From contig FLMG01000513.1 of NCBI GenBank assembly GCA_900088475.1, positions 1 to 60,021 on the forward strand: 60,021 nucleotides of DNA, given 5' to 3'. The stretch is from Hyphochytrium catenoides. Taxonomy: Eukaryota > Protista > Hyphochytriomycota. The notes below the pieces were generated by a model. It was given only the letters and a program-made list of their open reading frames with translations. It did no database searches and was not told the origin of the DNA. The translations under genes and the position numbers were made by a program. This document shows positions 23,086 through 32,609 of this stretch, piece after piece (positions within the stretch are counted from its first letter, which is position 1; each line of letters begins with the position of its first letter).

Positions 23086-25263
23086 CTACTCTGTCCAGCT
23101 GATGATGACTTGCCCTCCTTCACAGGTAACAGGATTCCCCCCGGCTATCATTACCATCCGCTCTACCGCATAGATCAAGCACCATGGACAAAAGTAAGCG
23201 CCACCAAGAAACATCAGGGTGGCGATAGTAGGCCAGAAATAATGCCTCGGGGTGGCTCTCCACTCCGCCAACAGGTTGATATCATAGGCCCTGCGAAGGA
23301 TTCCCATCACCAACAGAGACTGTACCCAGGCAACCAGAGCTTGAAACAGCACTCTCGGCAGTGTGGCCACCAAGATATGAAGGATAAGCTCAACCTCGGA
23401 TTCCATCAGCGAGGAGCAGGAGGGGGAGATGGCAGTCAGGATCAAAGTGGACATCACCCGAACACCGGCTACAACCCCTATGCTGACATAGCTGGAGAAC
23501 ATCACGGCAAAGACGTAGAGGATCCAAACCTCCTGCAGTGAATAGCGGTAGAAGCTTCTTTCTTCCCCAGCCGTTAGGCTCTTCCCTCGTTGCTGCTCGG
23601 AAACTCTACTGGTTCTCAGCACCAGTATAGGCGCTGGTTTATTCTTTATTTGATCTCTAGAGTCTGTGGGGGTGTCTTTGCGTTGACCTCCGTCATCTGT
23701 CTCTGCAGAGTTCACTTGCTGCTTTACAGGATCTACAGGGTAGGCAACTGGATCAGCGGTTACGGTAGGAGCTCTTTGGTGGTGGTGCTCTCTGACGGAA
23801 GATCGCGTCGATTGGCCCAGCTTCACCTGACCGCAATAACCATAAGCACTCTCATTCTTCAATGTAGTTGTTGAACCGTTGTGAGCTGCGGTTAGTTCAT
23901 TATCTCTGATTGGCACGGAGCCAATCTCTGGCCCGCTTTGCTTAACAAATGAGCCATCTTGGCGGGGGGAGATGGGATAGTTCTTTCGTGCCTCGGAAGG
24001 GAGATTATCGACCGTCTGCACCTTCTTACGACTCGGTTGGTTAAAGAGTGTTGTTCGTCGCCTTCTGAGCACTGTCTTCCAGGAGCGCTCAGAGAGGGCA
24101 TCTCGAACAGAGACAGAGATCAGACCAGCCACAGATATTGCAGCAGACAACACAGTGAGATAATGAAAATTTGCGTCGTCGGAGATGTCCATCATCCGCT
24201 GACCGCAGCTTAAGACAACCACCACCAGAAGCGCAGAGGGAAACCAGTTCGTGCGCATGTTTCGCGGCTGGAAGTAACCCTGGTCGTGCAGGATGTAGCC
24301 TTGGTGACGGATGGCGGTCTGGGAGACCATGGCTCCGAGGGGCAGCAACACACTGGTAAGCATAAACTTTATCCAGGGAGCAATGTTGGACGCCATGAGG
24401 TTGACGTGTAAAGGGAAGATCATCTCTGCAAGGATGATGGCACCGCTGAAGCCAAACATCTGTGGCAGTAGGACCAAGCCTACCAGGCGCCAGCCTGTCG
24501 GCCCGCTCTCCTTTCCATCTGTCCCCGCCTTCGCAGGAAGGGGTCGTGGACCCGCAGCGGATTCCCTAGCCTTGGGAATGGGTTGTGACTTGACAAGCTG
24601 CTGCTCTGCTGCCGTCAAAGATCCTCCAGGCAAGGATTGAGGAGATTTCTCTAGCTCCTGAGCGTAAAGCTTCTCCTTCCTCAGATACTCCGCCAAGCAA
24701 TAGGAGTTTGAGATCACTACCACTGTCACCATCAGACGCCCTGCAAGTCCTGTTAGGTGGTGGACGTACACCATGGCCATGCCGATGAAGGCGTGCATTA
24801 CGATGGCCGCCACATTCGTTCCAATTGTCCACTTTGCGTCTTGCAGGAGTGTCTTCACTCTGTATCCAGCGGAGATCATGGTGTACGCTAGAGGGCAACA
24901 ATTAGCCGCTCCGCCGTCTACAAGGACCTGATAAAGTATTCCGCCCAGAGAGTTCTGCAGCCTGTGGACCACCTCTATGGCGTTCAGCATTGGGATAAAG
25001 CTAGTTCCGGAGGCAGTCGAGGAGGAGGAGGAGGAGAAAGAAAGACCATGATGGTCCTCTCCTGGTGAGGTTGATCGGTCTGCGGATCTGTCCGTACAAT
25101 CTGACTCGTTGTGGTTGGAGCAGTACGGATACGTGAAGACCAACGTCTTGAGGGCGTAAAGGATGCCCAGTGCGACGACAAAAGAGTAGACCAGGGCCCA
25201 AAGACAGAAGATCATCATAGAGCAGACCTCCCAAAGCCGCTTTCTGATCTTCATCCCTACCAT
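23086..25263 (-). CDS. Multi-pass (~11 TM) membrane protein of unknown family, paralogue B
   Basis: Intronless ORF of ~725 aa with ~11 hydrophobic segments and two long low-complexity loops. Clear paralogue of 19401-21421. Confidence 0.85.
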   Translation of the reverse strand: MVGMKIRKRLWEVCSMMIFCLWALVYSFVVALGILYALKTLVFTYPYCSNHNESDCTDRSADRSTSPGEDHHGLSFSSSSSSTASGTSFIPMLNAIEVVHRLQNSLGGILYQVLVDGGAANCCPLAYTMISAGYRVKTLLQDAKWTIGTNVAAIVMHAFIGMAMVYVHHLTGLAGRLMVTVVVISNSYCLAEYLRKEKLYAQELEKSPQSLPGGSLTAAEQQLVKSQPIPKARESAAGPRPLPAKAGTDGKESGPTGWRLVGLVLLPQMFGFSGAIILAEMIFPLHVNLMASNIAPWIKFMLTSVLLPLGAMVSQTAIRHQGYILHDQGYFQPRNMRTNWFPSALLVVVVLSCGQRMMDISDDANFHYLTVLSAAISVAGLISVSVRDALSERSWKTVLRRRRTTLFNQPSRKKVQTVDNLPSEARKNYPISPRQDGSFVKQSGPEIGSVPIRDNELTAAHNGSTTTLKNESAYGYCGQVKLGQSTRSSVREHHHQRAPTVTADPVAYPVDPVKQQVNSAETDDGGQRKDTPTDSRDQIKNKPAPILVLRTSRVSEQQRGKSLTAGEERSFYRYSLQEVWILYVFAVMFSSYVSIGVVAGVRVMSTLILTAISPSCSSLMESEVELILHILVATLPRVLFQALVAWVQSLLVMGILRRAYDINLLAEWRATPRHYFWPTIATLMFLGGAYFCPWCLIYAVERMVMIAGGNPVTCEGGQVIISWTE

Positions 25264-25741
25264 CCGCAATCCTTGACACCCTACAACGTCTCTTTCATAG
25301 CCACATCACCAGAAAGCGAAGAGCATAAGAGTCCGCCCTGGACGACCCTGAGGAGAGGCGTCATGAGGAGCTGTAAGCCCAGTAGTAAGGACCTATGGAG
25401 GGCATCATCCTCCGCAAGGACTCCTCTCCTCTTGTTCAGTTTTTATATTTTTCTTCATCACCGCAACTCGACAAAGTCCCGCCAACAAGCCAAAGGCCAG
25501 CTCACGATCACGTGGCGGTTATCCCCATAAGGCCAGCGGTGGTACGATCTAAGAAGAACAGCAAGGAAGCAAAGGCCATGAGGGATATAAAGGTGGACCC
25601 AAGCAGAGCTGGCTCTAAGAGCTTGACAACAGTCCCTCCTCACTTTGTTGCCTGCTTGTTACTGCTTATCCCAGCGTGCCATTGAGAGTAAGGAGGTACT
25701 TTATTAATCACAAGGACGCTAAAGAGCTGTGTTGGCCTTCT

Positions 25742-25829: not shown

Positions 25830-27156
25830 CCTCACCAGGGAACTGGCTGGTGGAGGTGTATGGCCCACCAGACGGCGGAGGACAGATCACAAGGCAAGCT
25901 GCTTGACTCTATCAACAACGAGGGCAGAACAACAACACTGGCGACGTGCTTCTCCCTCCTCTCTTCTTCACATCCCGGGCAAGTAGACCTCACCACTCAT
26001 CAAAGACCCGGAGCAGCACCTGAGCTACGTCTGTCTCACTTCCTAGTCTAGAGAGAGCAAGGCGGTAAGGGAAGAGGAAGGTTGGAGAGCAAGAGGAGAG
26101 GGGAGAGAGATAGGAGGAGCACTGGTTGGAGTCCGTGATGAGGGTCGTTACACTTGCCACACTAGTCGTGAGGATTAGTAATATCCTTAGTTATTATGCC
26201 GCAAGATGACTCAAATTGGGACGCTTTGTTCCAAATAACACACCTTGGCGGGACATGGCTTGATAACGGGCTGAATCTTGGCAGATCTTGCGGTTTGCCT
26301 CCCTCTTCCCCTCATAGATGTCACGACGATCATCCTCGTGTCTGTCTGTTGGCACCGTCACCGGCTCACTTACTGAACCAGTGGTAAAGGTAAGGGCGAC
26401 GGTACTGTCCAACAGAGAGCTAATAGCATGGTGATGACCGCGTCTCCCGATAACTGTTCCTTCTCTTGATTGGTCACTCTCAGCCTATTATCATCATCCC
26501 AACCCGCAGGAGGCCCCTGCTGCTGCTGCCTTTCTAGCTGTCTCTTCCTCCTCCTAGTAGTGGTTCAGATAGGAAGAGAAGAAGCTTCCTCCCTCCTGCT
26601 GCTGTTGTGCTCCCTAGATCCCCTCTCCTATCCCTTTGTATACCTCCTCCTGCTTGTGGTGACCGTGCTTCGCATGGCGTTGTCTACTTCTTCCAGTTGT
26701 CTCTTCTGATGCTTTCGGCTTCTTGCAATTGTTTGATACGTCCCTGTTCACCCCTCTCTCTGGGTTGGACCATGATCATTTTGTACTCTCCGGGTCGTGG
26801 CGGCTATCCTCATCCTGCACTGTTCCCGTTTAATCGCGCAGCGCTACTGGGAGCTCAGGAACCATTCCATTTGTCAGATTATAGCTACGTTTTTATTCAG
26901 CCTAATGCTCATCGGTCCCAGATGGAGCGGCCATAGCAGAGCACGCAGGCTATTCACGAGGAGATACTCGAAGAGTCGTCAGAGATGTAATTGAGAAATC
27001 AAGAGCTTCTCTGCTTAGTGTTGACATCACCAGTGTTAGTGAACATAATCGATGCGATGTTGTCACAATCCTATGTCACACTGTGACTGTACCAAGGACT
27101 TACACCATACTTCGTTAGGATAGTCGACGAGGTGGTGCGGTGCTGAAGCATCGGCT

Positions 27157-28493
27157 TTATTCTCGCTTCTTGCCATTCAGTTTTTGTCTAAGTCTATCTA
27201 CCGTCTTTACCACTGACGCAGCCACCAGAGCAGAGATCATGAAGATCCATATGTAGAAGATCTGCTGATCGCAGGTGATAGCTGAGGACACTTGAGCTGG
27301 ACTACAATCACTAGGAGGCACAAAGACTGGGATTGATGAGGTGTCTTCGGTCTTCTGCGTGGGTTTGCATCGCGTGGGACAGTTGGTCTTATGATAATGA
27401 TAGCCAAGAAAAGCAAGAAGAGCGACCACATAGCAGGAGACCGCGAAACCTTGGGTCCAATTCGCGGTCAGACGTTGCCTATCATCATCTTTTTCCTGGG
27501 AGTGCTTCCACATCACAAATCTGAACTTGCCGCACTTCACGTTCATGAAGTTTCCACCTTCATAGACGACTTTGCATTTGAGGTCTGACTCTGAAGCTAC
27601 GACGTGCCAAAGAGGGCCAGACAACGCCGTCAATTGGTTCTAGAGGGGCCAAAAAGAGGTTGCAAGAGTGAGAGAGAAGGTCTTCAGGCGTGGTGCTACA
27701 TTAGCTTACCTTAAGGAGCTGGGCTGCTTGTTCATCACATGAGGCCCGTGATGAGACACTGCGGACGAGCTTCAAGACCTCTGCCATCCGCCCTGGCCCC
27801 ATATCAGAGAAAACTACCTTAGGCGTCCTAAAGATTGTGGAGATGCTTCGTAAATTTTTCGCACGGTTAAGTCTGATCTGGGTGAGCTTACAAAGTGTCT
27901 TCCTTAGTATGAATTTCGGGAATGACTTGTTTAGGCAGTGTGCCGAACTGGGCTGGGGCACTTTTGAATAACAGCACCTTGACGCCAGCCTTAGCATCGT
28001 TCATCACGACACAATAGCCTTTGCGCTGATTGACAAGGATTGGAGAGATCACAATGGGTGCCGGGGAAGTTGAAAAGACAAGGATAACTTACGAAGCGGA
28101 TGTCGACAGAGAAGTCCGTTCCGATGACGCAGTGCCACTCCAGGCCAAACTGTGAGATACCGATTAAGACAAGGCAAGTGATTGGGTGTCGGTCGTGATA
28201 GTGAAGATCAAGTCACAAACCTCTTTGTCAAACTCTTCTTTGAGCTGTGTGACGAAGTCACCAACCTTAGGCCTCGTGGATTTCCAAAGTCTATCTGCTG
28301 ACTAATTGCACGCGCCAGGGTTAGGAAGTTGCTCATCGTCACGAGGCTGTTCTTGGGGCATGTACGTGGGACAGCCTACCTCCTTTGCGAATGTTGCGAT
28401 GGCAAGGTTAACTTGAGGGACAGTTCCAACGACGAAGCCTTTGTACTGATTTCCTGAGCCTGAAGCTCTTTTGGTTGCCCTCTTGGCACTCAT
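27157..28493 (-). CDS. Protein with two dynein light chain LC8-like domains and two C-terminal TM helices (6 exons)
   Basis: Exons 28493-28380, 28301-28221, 28149-28093, 28025-27892, 27827-27710 and 27639-27157 splice in frame. Domain 1: QLKEEFDKEFGLEWHCVIGTDF...VLLFKS. Domain 2: VVFSDM...AAQLLKNQLTALSGPLWHVV...FVMWKH. Two hydrophobic helices follow. Confidence 0.8.
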
Positions 28494-29399
28494 GTTTATA
28501 GCCTAAAATATTGCTACGTCTTTTACGTCGTTGCAGCGTCGTCTATCGCACTCGGCAGCCTCCAAGCCCGCGGATGCTCTCACTAGCAGCCAGATTCTGA
28601 TGATTGGCTGATGCCAAGCGGGGTCGCCCTTCAAGATACCTGGTCCTACCGGTATTACCGGTAGAGTTAAGAGCTGACCTATCTCCAAGACCGGAGGAGG
28701 AACCACAACTCCCTCTCCCTTCCAGGGAAGGGCAGATGGCCTGAGTAGAGCCTGGCGAGTCAGCCCAGTGCACCTCTATTGTGGCGAGCTCTCACGTTGA
28801 TGGTCCCGTACCTATCAACCGATCATCAGTCTGTCTCAAGAACTGCTAACATCAACCTTGGAGCCTGTGAGGCCCATCAACCTGGCTTCGCCCTTTCACT
28901 CTCAGGCATACAGTTCTGCTCAAGCTACTCGAGTGAGTGCCTCAGAGGAGCGATCTATCCAACCACTGACCAGCCCAGCCTCATCAGAATCACAGAACAG
29001 AAGAGCCAGCAACAGAAGAAGAGAGGGTAAGGGCTCCCTGTCGGCCCCCAGGACTTCCGGGTCTTCCACAGATCGACCCCAGTAGTTGGCTTTGGTTGTC
29101 CTTTGAAGAAGCGAAGCGGCAGCGACGCCCAGCAGCGCAACGCCAACTTCCTCGTTCACATCGGCAATGTGAAGCTTAAGTCGGCCAGTGGTCTCCTCTC
29201 GAGCTCTTTGAAGACTCTTTCCTAATCCTTACGGCTGCGCCTGTCATCCACGGAGCAAACCAAGCAGTACCTTATTGCAAGCTTGTGAAAATGGTGGTTT
29301 GCTAAGACGTGGTGGAGCATCTAGCAGCGGACAACCATGTCTTGCTGTCGCCGAGCAAACGGGATATCGCCCAAGATCTTGGCGTCTCTGACGGATAAG

Positions 29400-30250
29400 C
29401 TTCGCGCCATAGAGAAGTATTATCCTGGCACTTCTTTTGCGGCGATCTTGACTACATCAGGAGAGTTAGTGTGAGTGAGAAGGCTAAAGGTGCCACATTT
29501 GAATCTGTAGTGACAATTGTTCTCCCTCTTCGGGCTTCCTTTACAGTGTGTCCAGCAACAAACAGTCGGCCAAGCAGGACGAGCTCTTCCGAGTAATTGC
29601 TTCTTTAAAGCGAGCGGCAATACAATTTGGTAGGCAGCCTCTTTCCTAGTGGACTCGATGTTCGCGGAGAAACGTTAGATTGACTCCTTGCATTGATTCC
29701 CTATTAGCAAGTACTTTGGATCAATCAGATTGTCCCGTCATGCATATTGCCGGCGAGAAGACTCTATTTTCTTGCTATGACATCACCACGCAACTTCCAG
29801 ATGCCGAAAGATTTGTAAGTTGCCAGGGTCTATCTTATCGCGATTCATGCTTTCCCTGATATGTTGGCTTACTTTGTTCGACACAGCTCCTTGCCTTCTT
29901 CACAGAGTTCACGGACACACCGCCATCCGACTTTTCTGGTGCAGATGAGCAGATGGCAGGCGTTGTCGAAGACCTTCGGCAGCTGCTGCGAAATCTGATG
30001 ATATGATCTCTCTTCAGGGAGAGTCACGACCGTATATCCTAGCACTATCTCAATCTATTTATTAAGGCTTTAGCGCCTTCTCCACAATTGACAGGATATG
30101 GGAAGTCCAAAGGGATAAGAACCAACTCTTTAAGAAGTTCATTTTCCACGCTTGTCAATGCCTAAACAGAGACGGGCAGTGTCCTGCATTGACACTATGC
30201 CTGCCTTAAATGAGGGAGAACATGAAAGGTGTCAGAAGTCAGAACAGCTC
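29400..30250 (-). mobile_element. Possible highly decayed Mutator/MULE transposase relic
   Basis: Frame-broken fragments ALTSVENE..(K)SWFL and KVFDNACHLLIC resemble MULE E-N..SW.WFL and VFP.A.H..C motifs. Many stop codons. Confidence 0.3.
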
Positions 30251-31760: not shown

Positions 31761-32609
31761 CTACCTGAGAAGACACATAGCCGTTAGTAACAACGCCACC
31801 ATGCCACCCCAGTTCTGCACCCTTAGTACTGGTGCATTTGAAGAAGGAATCGGCTGAGACGAGGGTAAGCCTGTATCGTCATTAGGCTGAGCTGTCAACG
31901 ATGAGCCGTTGTCCTGTCCCTCTTCGGTTGGGGTGACGGTCGTGGCCGTAGGGGCTGCAGTCTGCGCAGTTATATTAGCTGCTGTTGACGGCAGCGGCGC
32001 CACAGTTGCTGTTGCTGGGGAGCGAGTCGTTGGACGGGTCGTGGATGGCGAGGGTGTTGATGTTGGAAGAGGAGAAGGAGTCGTGACCGCAGTGGGCTTC
32101 GTCGAAGGCTCTGGCATAGCCGTTGTTGGGCTGGGAGTAGGTGTTGCTTGTGGCGGCGGGGCGGTGGATGGCTGCTGGCTTTGAGCCCACCCCTGCGGGT
32201 ACTTTATGTATTGTGGCTCATTGGGACCCCCCGTTGCCAGAATCGCTTGCTCTGCTGCCGGATATTCAGGACATTGTCCAGCAGGTAGGAAGACCTCTTT
32301 TCCATCTTTTGTCATGCAGCAGTCTTCCGTGGTCTGACTATGCCTCAACTGATCTCTGCAGCAATAGATATACTGTGCATACTCGGAGTTCCCTCTTGTA
32401 TACCGCATATAGTTCAGAGTGTCGACAGAGACTTGGCGATATTCTGTGTAATCATAGCGAAGATTAACGCATTTGTAAGCAGTCCCACAGCAGCCGGAAA
32501 CACCTGGCGGTGCCGCGAGAAGAGAGACCGCTGCCACAAGAAGGGCTGACGTTAGGAAACTCCTTGCCCCTTCTCCAAGTCTTAGAAACGACGATGCCAT
32601 TGTCACCAT
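31761..32609 (-). CDS. Secreted, probably GPI-anchored surface protein (Cys-rich head plus Thr/Pro mucin-like stalk)
   Basis: Hydrophobic signal segment, Cys-rich domain (CC, C, CC, CC, C), TPTPSPTT-rich stalk, SS followed by a hydrophobic C-terminal tail. Intronless. Confidence 0.75.
   Translation of the reverse strand: MVTMASSFLRLGEGARSFLTSALLVAAVSLLAAPPGVSGCCGTAYKCVNLRYDYTEYRQVSVDTLNYMRYTRGNSEYAQYIYCCRDQLRHSQTTEDCCMTKDGKEVFLPAGQCPEYPAAEQAILATGGPNEPQYIKYPQGWAQSQQPSTAPPPQATPTPSPTTAMPEPSTKPTAVTTPSPLPTSTPSPSTTRPTTRSPATATVAPLPSTAANITAQTAAPTATTVTPTEEGQDNGSSLTAQPNDDTGLPSSQPIPSSNAPVLRVQNWGGMVALLLTAMCLLR

Follow-up and report, generated by a model that had tools for sequence, protein, structure and literature searches.

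The window, a stretch of 60,021 nucleotides from Hyphochytrium catenoides contig FLMG01000513.1, carries on its minus strand, from 28493 to 27157, a gene for a predicted protein with two LC8-like domains followed by a two-helix membrane anchor. This is probably an intact, single-copy nuclear gene of this stramenopile, for an integral membrane protein whose tandem LC8 domains would form a single-chain pseudo-dimer that captures partner peptides. Few eukaryotic hub proteins are as conserved as LC8, which to our knowledge has always been treated as a free, symmetric homodimer.

Gene structure

The gene has six exons and five introns of 78, 71, 67, 64 and 70 nt, all with GT..AG borders (5/5). The spliced coding sequence comprises 987 nt, which correspond to 328 codons and a stop, and begins with the ATG at 28493, which has an in-frame stop just upstream. 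Each of the six exons is translated without a stop and the exon phases fit, with a Leu codon divided between exon 4 (2 nt) and exon 5 (1 nt). The protein is ordered as LC8-like domain 1, a linker of ~25 residues, LC8-like domain 2, a first hydrophobic helix (TM1), a loop, a second hydrophobic helix (TM2) and a basic tail, and its parts are placed as follows:

28380..28493, minus strand: exon 1, 38 codons; basic N-terminus, then β1 and most of α1 of LC8-like domain 1
28221..28301, minus strand: exon 2, 27 codons; end of α1 and α2 of domain 1, with the C-terminal sequence ...LKEEFDKE
28093..28149, minus strand: exon 3, 19 codons; FGLEWHCVIGTDFSVDIRF, β2-β3 of domain 1
27892..28025, minus strand: exon 4; β4-β5 of domain 1 (RKGYCVVMNDAKAGVKVLLFKS, 27960-28025), then the start of the linker
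27710..27827, minus strand: exon 5; end of the linker, then β1, α1 and the start of α2 of domain 2 (KVVFSDMGPGRMAEVLKLV...)
27157..27639, minus strand: exon 6, 160 codons and stop; remainder of domain 2, TM1, loop, TM2 and tail
27499..27639, minus strand: exon 6 residues 1-47; end of α2 and β2-β5 of domain 2 (...GPLWHVVAS...FVMWKHS)
27400..27456, minus strand: TM1, exon 6 residues about 62-80, TQGFAVSCYVVALLAFLGY
27262..27399, minus strand: inter-helix loop, 46 residues, with four conserved Cys (CX3C and CX10C)
27208..27261, minus strand: TM2, exon 6 residues 127-144, IFYIWIFMISALVAASVV
27157..27207, minus strand: basic C-terminal tail and stop, KTVDRLRQKLNGKKRE; the last four residues are KKRE

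The first-pass annotation had assembled this arrangement of two LC8 domains and two transmembrane segments by splicing, and the strings that it quoted and the architecture are all present on the minus strand at this place. The string that runs from EFDKE into FGLEWHCVIGTDF crosses the junction of exons 2 and 3, and both CPTRC...C...C and the terminal KLNGKKRE are in exon 6. The N-terminus encoded by exon 1 has no hydrophobic signal segment and resembles the brown-alga N-termini MGKATKEK... and MGKTSKGK....

Relatives in brown algae

Exon 6 was run by exhaustive phmmer over 1.84 billion representatives and gave three matches (P0001, P0002 and P0003). P0001 (213 aa, from a JGI metagenome) aligns to exon 6 residues 2-159 and P0003 (423 aa, from Undaria pinnatifida) to residues 2-95, and the two take in the LC8 half and both hydrophobic helices with the cysteine loop between them. 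P0002 (766 residues) was rejected as spurious: it is a repeat protein that carries CP-x-PC motifs and resembles neither the LC8 nor the TM part. A word search with exon 6 gave no match in a length window of 88-280 residues, a filter that would exclude full-length relatives. Profile word searches added full-length proteins from Pylaiella littoralis (P0005, 360 aa), Ectocarpus (P0007) and Scytosiphon (P0008), the EukProt proteins P0004 (362 aa) and P0006 (328 aa), with entries named g3063.t1 and g19138.t1, and orthologue fragments from Choristocarpus and Hapterophycus. Annotated orthologues are present in at least seven brown-alga entries, all of them unnamed in the source records.

In the brown-alga proteins, an N-terminal basic stretch is followed by domain 1 (…GPEWHC.VGKVKAFSVHVRYWRGKSF…LRI.VFQSAPP), a Pro-rich linker, domain 2 (…IKVLRSEME…GPVWHVVA…WKHAQ), TM1, the cysteine loop, TM2 and a basic tail. 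They have the same end-to-end architecture as the window protein, including WKHxQ, C-x3-C and C-x10-C, and are ~24-30% identical to exon 6; they differ in their longer Pro-rich linkers, an extra Cys pair in the loop (CxxCC, GC), a weaker TM2 and the lack of KKxx at the C-terminus. The short exon for HGPEWHC…VHVRY, found in every other brown-alga orthologue, is missing from the Undaria model P0003, which also has about 120 extra C-terminal residues after TM2; both oddities are probably annotation errors in the public model.

The exons of the window follow the orthologues along their length. By tblastn, exon 3 is 55% identical to P0005 residues 69-88 (E 0.001), exon 4 aligns to P0005 residues 99-110, the exon 5 sequence KVVFSDMGPGRMAEVL is matched by P0006 residues 126-141, and exon 6 aligns to P0005 residues 184-348. 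When a profile built from five brown-alga proteins was run over the six frames of 26000-30000 of the window (4 kb), the best three matches were E6 (profile positions 166-288, E 9e-12), E3 (48-69, E 0.002) and E4 (71-99, E 0.13); they lie in the order E3, E4, E6 on the minus strand, with E4 directly after E3 in the profile. Spacing is also kept: the W of WHC and the F of LLFKS or VFQS are 34 residues apart in the window and in the brown algae alike, and β1 and WHC are 46 residues apart in both the window and P0004.

Metagenome relative

The sole relative found outside the brown algae is P0001, which is encoded on contig Ga0620614_005726 of JGI metagenome 3300071654 (L009), an intron-bearing, eukaryotic contig of 57% G+C. 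A domain-1-like exon sequence (…GPAWHCIVGPEDFTINIRY…) lies upstream of the ORF for domain 2 and the TM part, and the domain-1-like exons (…QHGPAWHCIVGPEDFTINIRY…, …CFIFKSADESLKLLVFQ…) share the strand of the P0001 ORF and lie a few hundred bases upstream of it. The position of the intron between exons 3 and 4 is not exactly common to this contig, where it lies ~3 codons further downstream. An argument that domains 1 and 2 form one uninterrupted exon there was dropped; the frame is open, but there are plausible splice sites inside it. Prokaryote-style gene calls on the contig cut the tandem-LC8 gene into pieces, and a Glyco_transf_90 gene is found downstream of the P0001 ORF.

One gene or two

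The homologue survey that the first-pass annotation had proposed as a check thus gave brown-alga orthologues and a metagenome contig with the same layout, and the presence of this layout in three separate lineages is the main argument that the exons of the window form one gene. The join between the LC8 and TM parts, which the annotation had put forward, is borne out by the colinearity of the exons with full-length brown-alga orthologues at the same spacing. Comparison of sequences confirms the predicted six-exon gene for a 328-residue protein with tandem LC8 domains and a two-helix anchor as real and more than chance, because exon 6 matches PF01221 and because E3, E4 and E6 are the best matches of the orthologue profile and are colinear.

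It is very improbable that the architecture is an artefact that joins a soluble single-LC8 protein (exons 1-4) to an LC8-TM protein (exons 5-6), as neighbouring genes or as alternative transcripts. Retention of intron 4, which would give an in-frame TAA at the donor and a soluble product of 129 residues, and the ATG codons within exon 5 speak for such a separation. However, a terminator and a promoter would not fit into the 64 nt between exons 4 and 5, several brown-alga genomes have independent annotations of the fused architecture, the metagenome contig has the same order, and the exon phases of the gene in the window fit. As to the intron itself (27828-27891, 64 nt), the frame that reads into it meets a TAA overlapping the donor (ctttGTAAgc), and the resulting soluble protein, with LC8-like domain 1 only, may be a putative regulated isoform.

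LC8 character of the two domains

When the exons of the window were searched one by one against Pfam, exon 6 residues 3-45 matched positions 44-85 of the 86 positions of Dynein_light (PF01221; E 3.2e-5, 24.6 bits). This score is below the gathering score of 29.1 bits because exon 6 holds only half a domain. No other exon, searched singly, reaches detection, so that exon 6 alone matches Dynein_light. The junction of exons 2 and 3 restores the motif FDK-x5-WHC (…KKEFDKKYNPTWHC…) at the spacing of solved LC8 in the sequence alignment, and both this motif and LLFKS are kept in domain 1.

Domain 1 of the orthologues reaches 29.8-35.5 bits against PF01221; their domain 2 reaches 42.4-44.9 bits, and 45.8 bits in Undaria. 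All these values are above the cut-off of 29.1 bits, and both halves also match solved LC8 chains by sequence. Pfam had been named as the check for the LC8 nature of both halves; both halves of the orthologues lie above the gathering score, and the window itself offers the half-domain of exon 6.

The fold was modelled with AlphaFold on the Pylaiella orthologue P0005. Its full-length model (7-row alignment, pLDDT 59, pTM 0.39) has two β-α-α-β units, and residues 236-273 and 311-355 form two long helices towards the C-terminus. The model of residues 1-232, made with a 12-row alignment that includes the exons of the window and of the metagenome contig, has pLDDT 78.7 and pTM 0.72, and its DSSP assignment gives β1-α1-α2 and four β strands twice. 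Domain 1 has the LC8 order of elements in the model, with pLDDT of about 90 at residues 31-80, and the linker is disordered (pLDDT <50 at residues 110-137). Domain 2 (residues 135-230) can be superposed on LC8 chains of known structure with Z 13.3-13.5 and rmsd 1.5-1.9 Å over 84-89 residues, which is the entire target chain, and with a Foldseek TM of up to 0.86. The possibility, raised beforehand, that the second domain might not have the LC8 fold is therefore not supported, domain 2 of the Pylaiella orthologue reaching Z 13. Sequence scores and predicted models together show the LC8 homology and the LC8 fold of both domains in the orthologues.

Pairing of the two domains

Canonical LC8 is an obligate strand-swapped dimer with two peptide-binding grooves. 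The dipeptide Trp-His at the start of β2, which we take to be W54-H55 in canonical LC8 numbering, with His55 at the dimer interface, is present as WHC in domain 1 and as WHV in domain 2, and is invariant in all relatives. In the first-pass annotation the two domains had been proposed to form a single-chain pseudo-dimer, and this part of the proposal gained indirect support from model scores: the tandem part of the orthologue has pTM 0.72, and both β3 segments are ordered as strands in the model of P0005 residues 1-232, although not in the full-length model. Such a pTM, in a chain of 232 residues with ~45 disordered ones, suggests that the domains are confidently placed against each other in the model, which fits an intramolecular pseudo-dimer as support and not as proof. 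Domain 2 of P0005 fits chains from dimers with rmsd 1.5-1.9 Å and monomeric NMR forms with 3.2-3.6 Å, and the better fit to dimer chains also points towards intramolecular pairing.

The LC8 domains could instead pair between molecules, which would give membrane-bound dimers or daisy-chain arrays with a role in clustering or zipping membranes or membrane proteins, rather than a single-chain hub. This mode of pairing, which we judge distinctly unlikely, would agree with the obligate dimerisation of canonical LC8 (solved dimers are among the structural matches), with the lack of confident inter-domain packing in the full-length P0005 model (pTM 0.39), and with the long disordered linker (pLDDT <50, residues 110-137), which permits either mode. 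Against it, the pTM of 0.72 for the tandem part would be hard to obtain with two unpacked domains and ~45 disordered residues, and a tether of 25-45 residues would create a very high local concentration that favours pairing within the chain.

The peptide-binding edge

In LC8, β3 is the edge strand that pairs with ligand peptides. In the alignment this strand reads DFSVDIRF in domain 1 and DLKCKVVYE in domain 2, against NFGSYVTHE in solved LC8. The canonical groove for TQT peptides presumably includes residues Y65, T67 and H68, which read D, R and F in domain 1 and C, V and Y in domain 2, so the groove residues are not kept. Domain 2 of the brown algae retains V-x-H-E in β3 (SVAHE). Since both domains have altered groove residues, it is doubtful, as judged from the alignment, that the window protein binds classic TQT clients or the dynein intermediate chain. 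The β3 strand of domain 1 is strikingly conserved in the brown algae, the window and the metagenome relative, with the pattern [AD]F[ST][VI]x[VI]R[YF].

The LC8-like domains may also be a structural or dimerising module that has nothing to do with dynein or LC8 clients, for example in a hairpin protein of the mitochondrial outer membrane with a CX3C/CX10C loop that undergoes oxidation in the intermembrane space, with domains like the DLC-like ones of trematode tegument proteins (TAL/CaBP). We regard this reading as unlikely. It would account for the diverged groove residues, as seen in the alignments and with the canonical residue roles as assumed above, and the best structural matches include the DLC-like domains of FhCaBP2/4 and CsTAL3. 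The unusual conservation of β3 in domain 1, however, suggests a conserved binding edge, and the dimer-interface residues W54-H55 are kept in both domains.

Membrane anchor, cysteine loop and tail

Kyte-Doolittle 19-mer averages in exon 6 have maxima of 1.55 near residues 61-80 and 2.11 at residues 126-144. A hydrophobic segment is found at the place of TM1 in all relatives and is modelled as a long helix in the Pylaiella orthologue, while TM2 is conserved but less hydrophobic in the relatives, with moderate Kyte-Doolittle values of 1.4-1.6 in the brown algae. Four Cys columns are invariant across Undaria, P0001 and the window, and correspond to C87 and C91 (CX3C), just past TM1, and C112 and C123 (CX10C), just ahead of TM2, of exon 6; the brown algae carry two further Cys. 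The pair of hydrophobic helices with a Cys-containing loop, as described in the first-pass annotation, is accordingly conserved among the relatives.

The annotation had also likened the tail to a KKxx ER-retrieval signal, and this likeness stands for two of the proteins: the C-termini KKRE, in the window, and KKLV, in P0001, follow the KKxx pattern, and the motif is absent from the C-terminus of all six full-length brown-alga models (6/6). ER retrieval is therefore weakly supported as a possibility in Hyphochytrium catenoides, judging from its C-terminal residues, and not as a trait of the family. The CX3C...CX10C loop would suit the ER lumen and the mitochondrial intermembrane space equally well. 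These features bear on the structural module considered above: twin-cysteine helical-hairpin motifs are typical of the Mia40 pathway, which would favour it, as would the lack of KKxx conservation in the brown algae, but the window protein and its metagenome relative do end in KKxx. N-myristoylation, for which the brown-alga MGK starts could be considered, was rejected for the window protein, which starts with MSAK and has neither Ser nor Thr at position 6.

The N-terminus is likely to be in the cytosol, the loop in a lumen, outside the cell or in the intermembrane space, and the tail again in the cytosol; this topology follows from the lack of a signal peptide and from the folded N-terminal part of ~230 residues ahead of the anchor.

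Copy number, distribution and genomic neighbourhood

The tandem-LC8 gene is single copy in its own genome. A family scan of the whole genome (4759 contigs, 61.0 Mb) found the exon 6 piece and at least seven other Dynein_light loci (L001-L007), several of which are diverged, with WNC, WQC or WHV instead of WHC; the fully canonical strand NFGSYVTHE is in none of these scored loci. Two weak matches of exon 6 in the same genome, L011 and L012, were rejected as paralogues, having no LC8 part. L012 (G000:C1850:22004-22126, minus strand) is within a 216-codon coiled-coil ORF whose C-terminal hydrophobic sequence …LAICLLAFQGYHYYQHRRPSTC… resembles the TM1/juxtamembrane sequence …VVALLAFLGYHYHKTNCPTRC…, a likeness that may be due to chance or to a shared sorting motif. 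Near the gene, the window has an ORF of 727 codons for a multi-pass membrane protein (23086-25269, minus strand) and one of 282 codons (31761-32609, minus strand) for a protein with a signal-like N-terminus and a Cys-rich head, followed by a mucin-like stalk rich in Thr and Pro and by a hydrophobic C-terminus.

The family is small and is distributed among brown algae, Hyphochytrium catenoides and one environmental eukaryote. Relatives in oomycetes, diatoms and other groups were not found in the protein searches, in which sequences of ~30% identity could be missed. In a literature search no membrane-anchored or tandem LC8 was found described, and searches of the ESM Atlas by features and by shape gave no cluster of tandem or membrane LC8 proteins. 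The verdict is a new domain architecture of a known fold, in a family that was not found described, with a function that we infer.

Proposed protein

For its topology, intramolecular pairing, ligand binding and target membrane, the following arrangement is proposed. The first ~230 residues, with the two diverged LC8/Dynein_light domains and no signal peptide, would lie in the cytosol. The loop of 46 residues in the two-TM hairpin, probably with two disulfides (CX3C...CX10C), would face an oxidising compartment, and the short basic tail would lie in the cytosol again. The two LC8 domains most likely pair with one another in the manner of canonical LC8 monomers and form a single-chain asymmetric pseudo-dimer. 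The terminal WKHxQ of domain 2 is only ~15 residues before TM1, which places the LC8 module close to the membrane, and would keep the pseudo-dimer no more than about 15 residues from the membrane surface. There, extended peptide segments of at least one partner protein would be captured in its two non-identical edge grooves. The favoured function is thus that of a membrane-tethered asymmetric LC8-type dock for extended peptide segments, in which a dynein partnership is not assumed.

A broader role is possible, though we hold it to be doubtful: an undescribed membrane LC8 hub that dates from the common ancestor of ochrophyte algae and pseudofungi, in which the asymmetric heterodimer sits on an organelle or flagellar membrane and recruits dynein or linear-motif partners without an adaptor, its two unequal grooves each reading a different motif.

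If the membrane-tethered dock is real, a natural single-chain membrane LC8 would be a ready-made asymmetric LC8 with two different grooves, and a lineage could hard-wire an LC8 binding site to a membrane without adaptor proteins. The patchy spread of the family makes it a useful marker of gene loss in stramenopiles, and the annotation alone is useful, as the family is unnamed in every source record seen.

Comparison with known LC8 proteins

The window family shares the β1-α1-α2-β2-β3-β4-β5 fold of the LC8/DYNLL proteins, such as human DYNLL1/2, Chlamydomonas LC8 and yeast Dyn2. Canonical LC8 is a soluble, symmetric homodimer of chains of ~89 residues, whereas the window protein has 328 residues, two diverged copies of the domain, a two-helix anchor and a Cys loop. 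The nearest described multi-domain LC8 proteins are the trematode proteins with EF-hands and a DLC-like domain. Among these, FhCaBP2, FhCaBP4 and CsTAL3 also have an LC8-like domain within a larger protein and are among the top structural matches (5fx0, with Z 13.5, 9voa and 5x2d), of which 9voa is also a sequence match. Pfam scans of the window exons and of the orthologues gave no EF-hand family. The trematode TAL/CaBP proteins are soluble, with N-terminal EF-hands and a single DLC-like domain, while the window family combines two LC8 domains with a membrane anchor.
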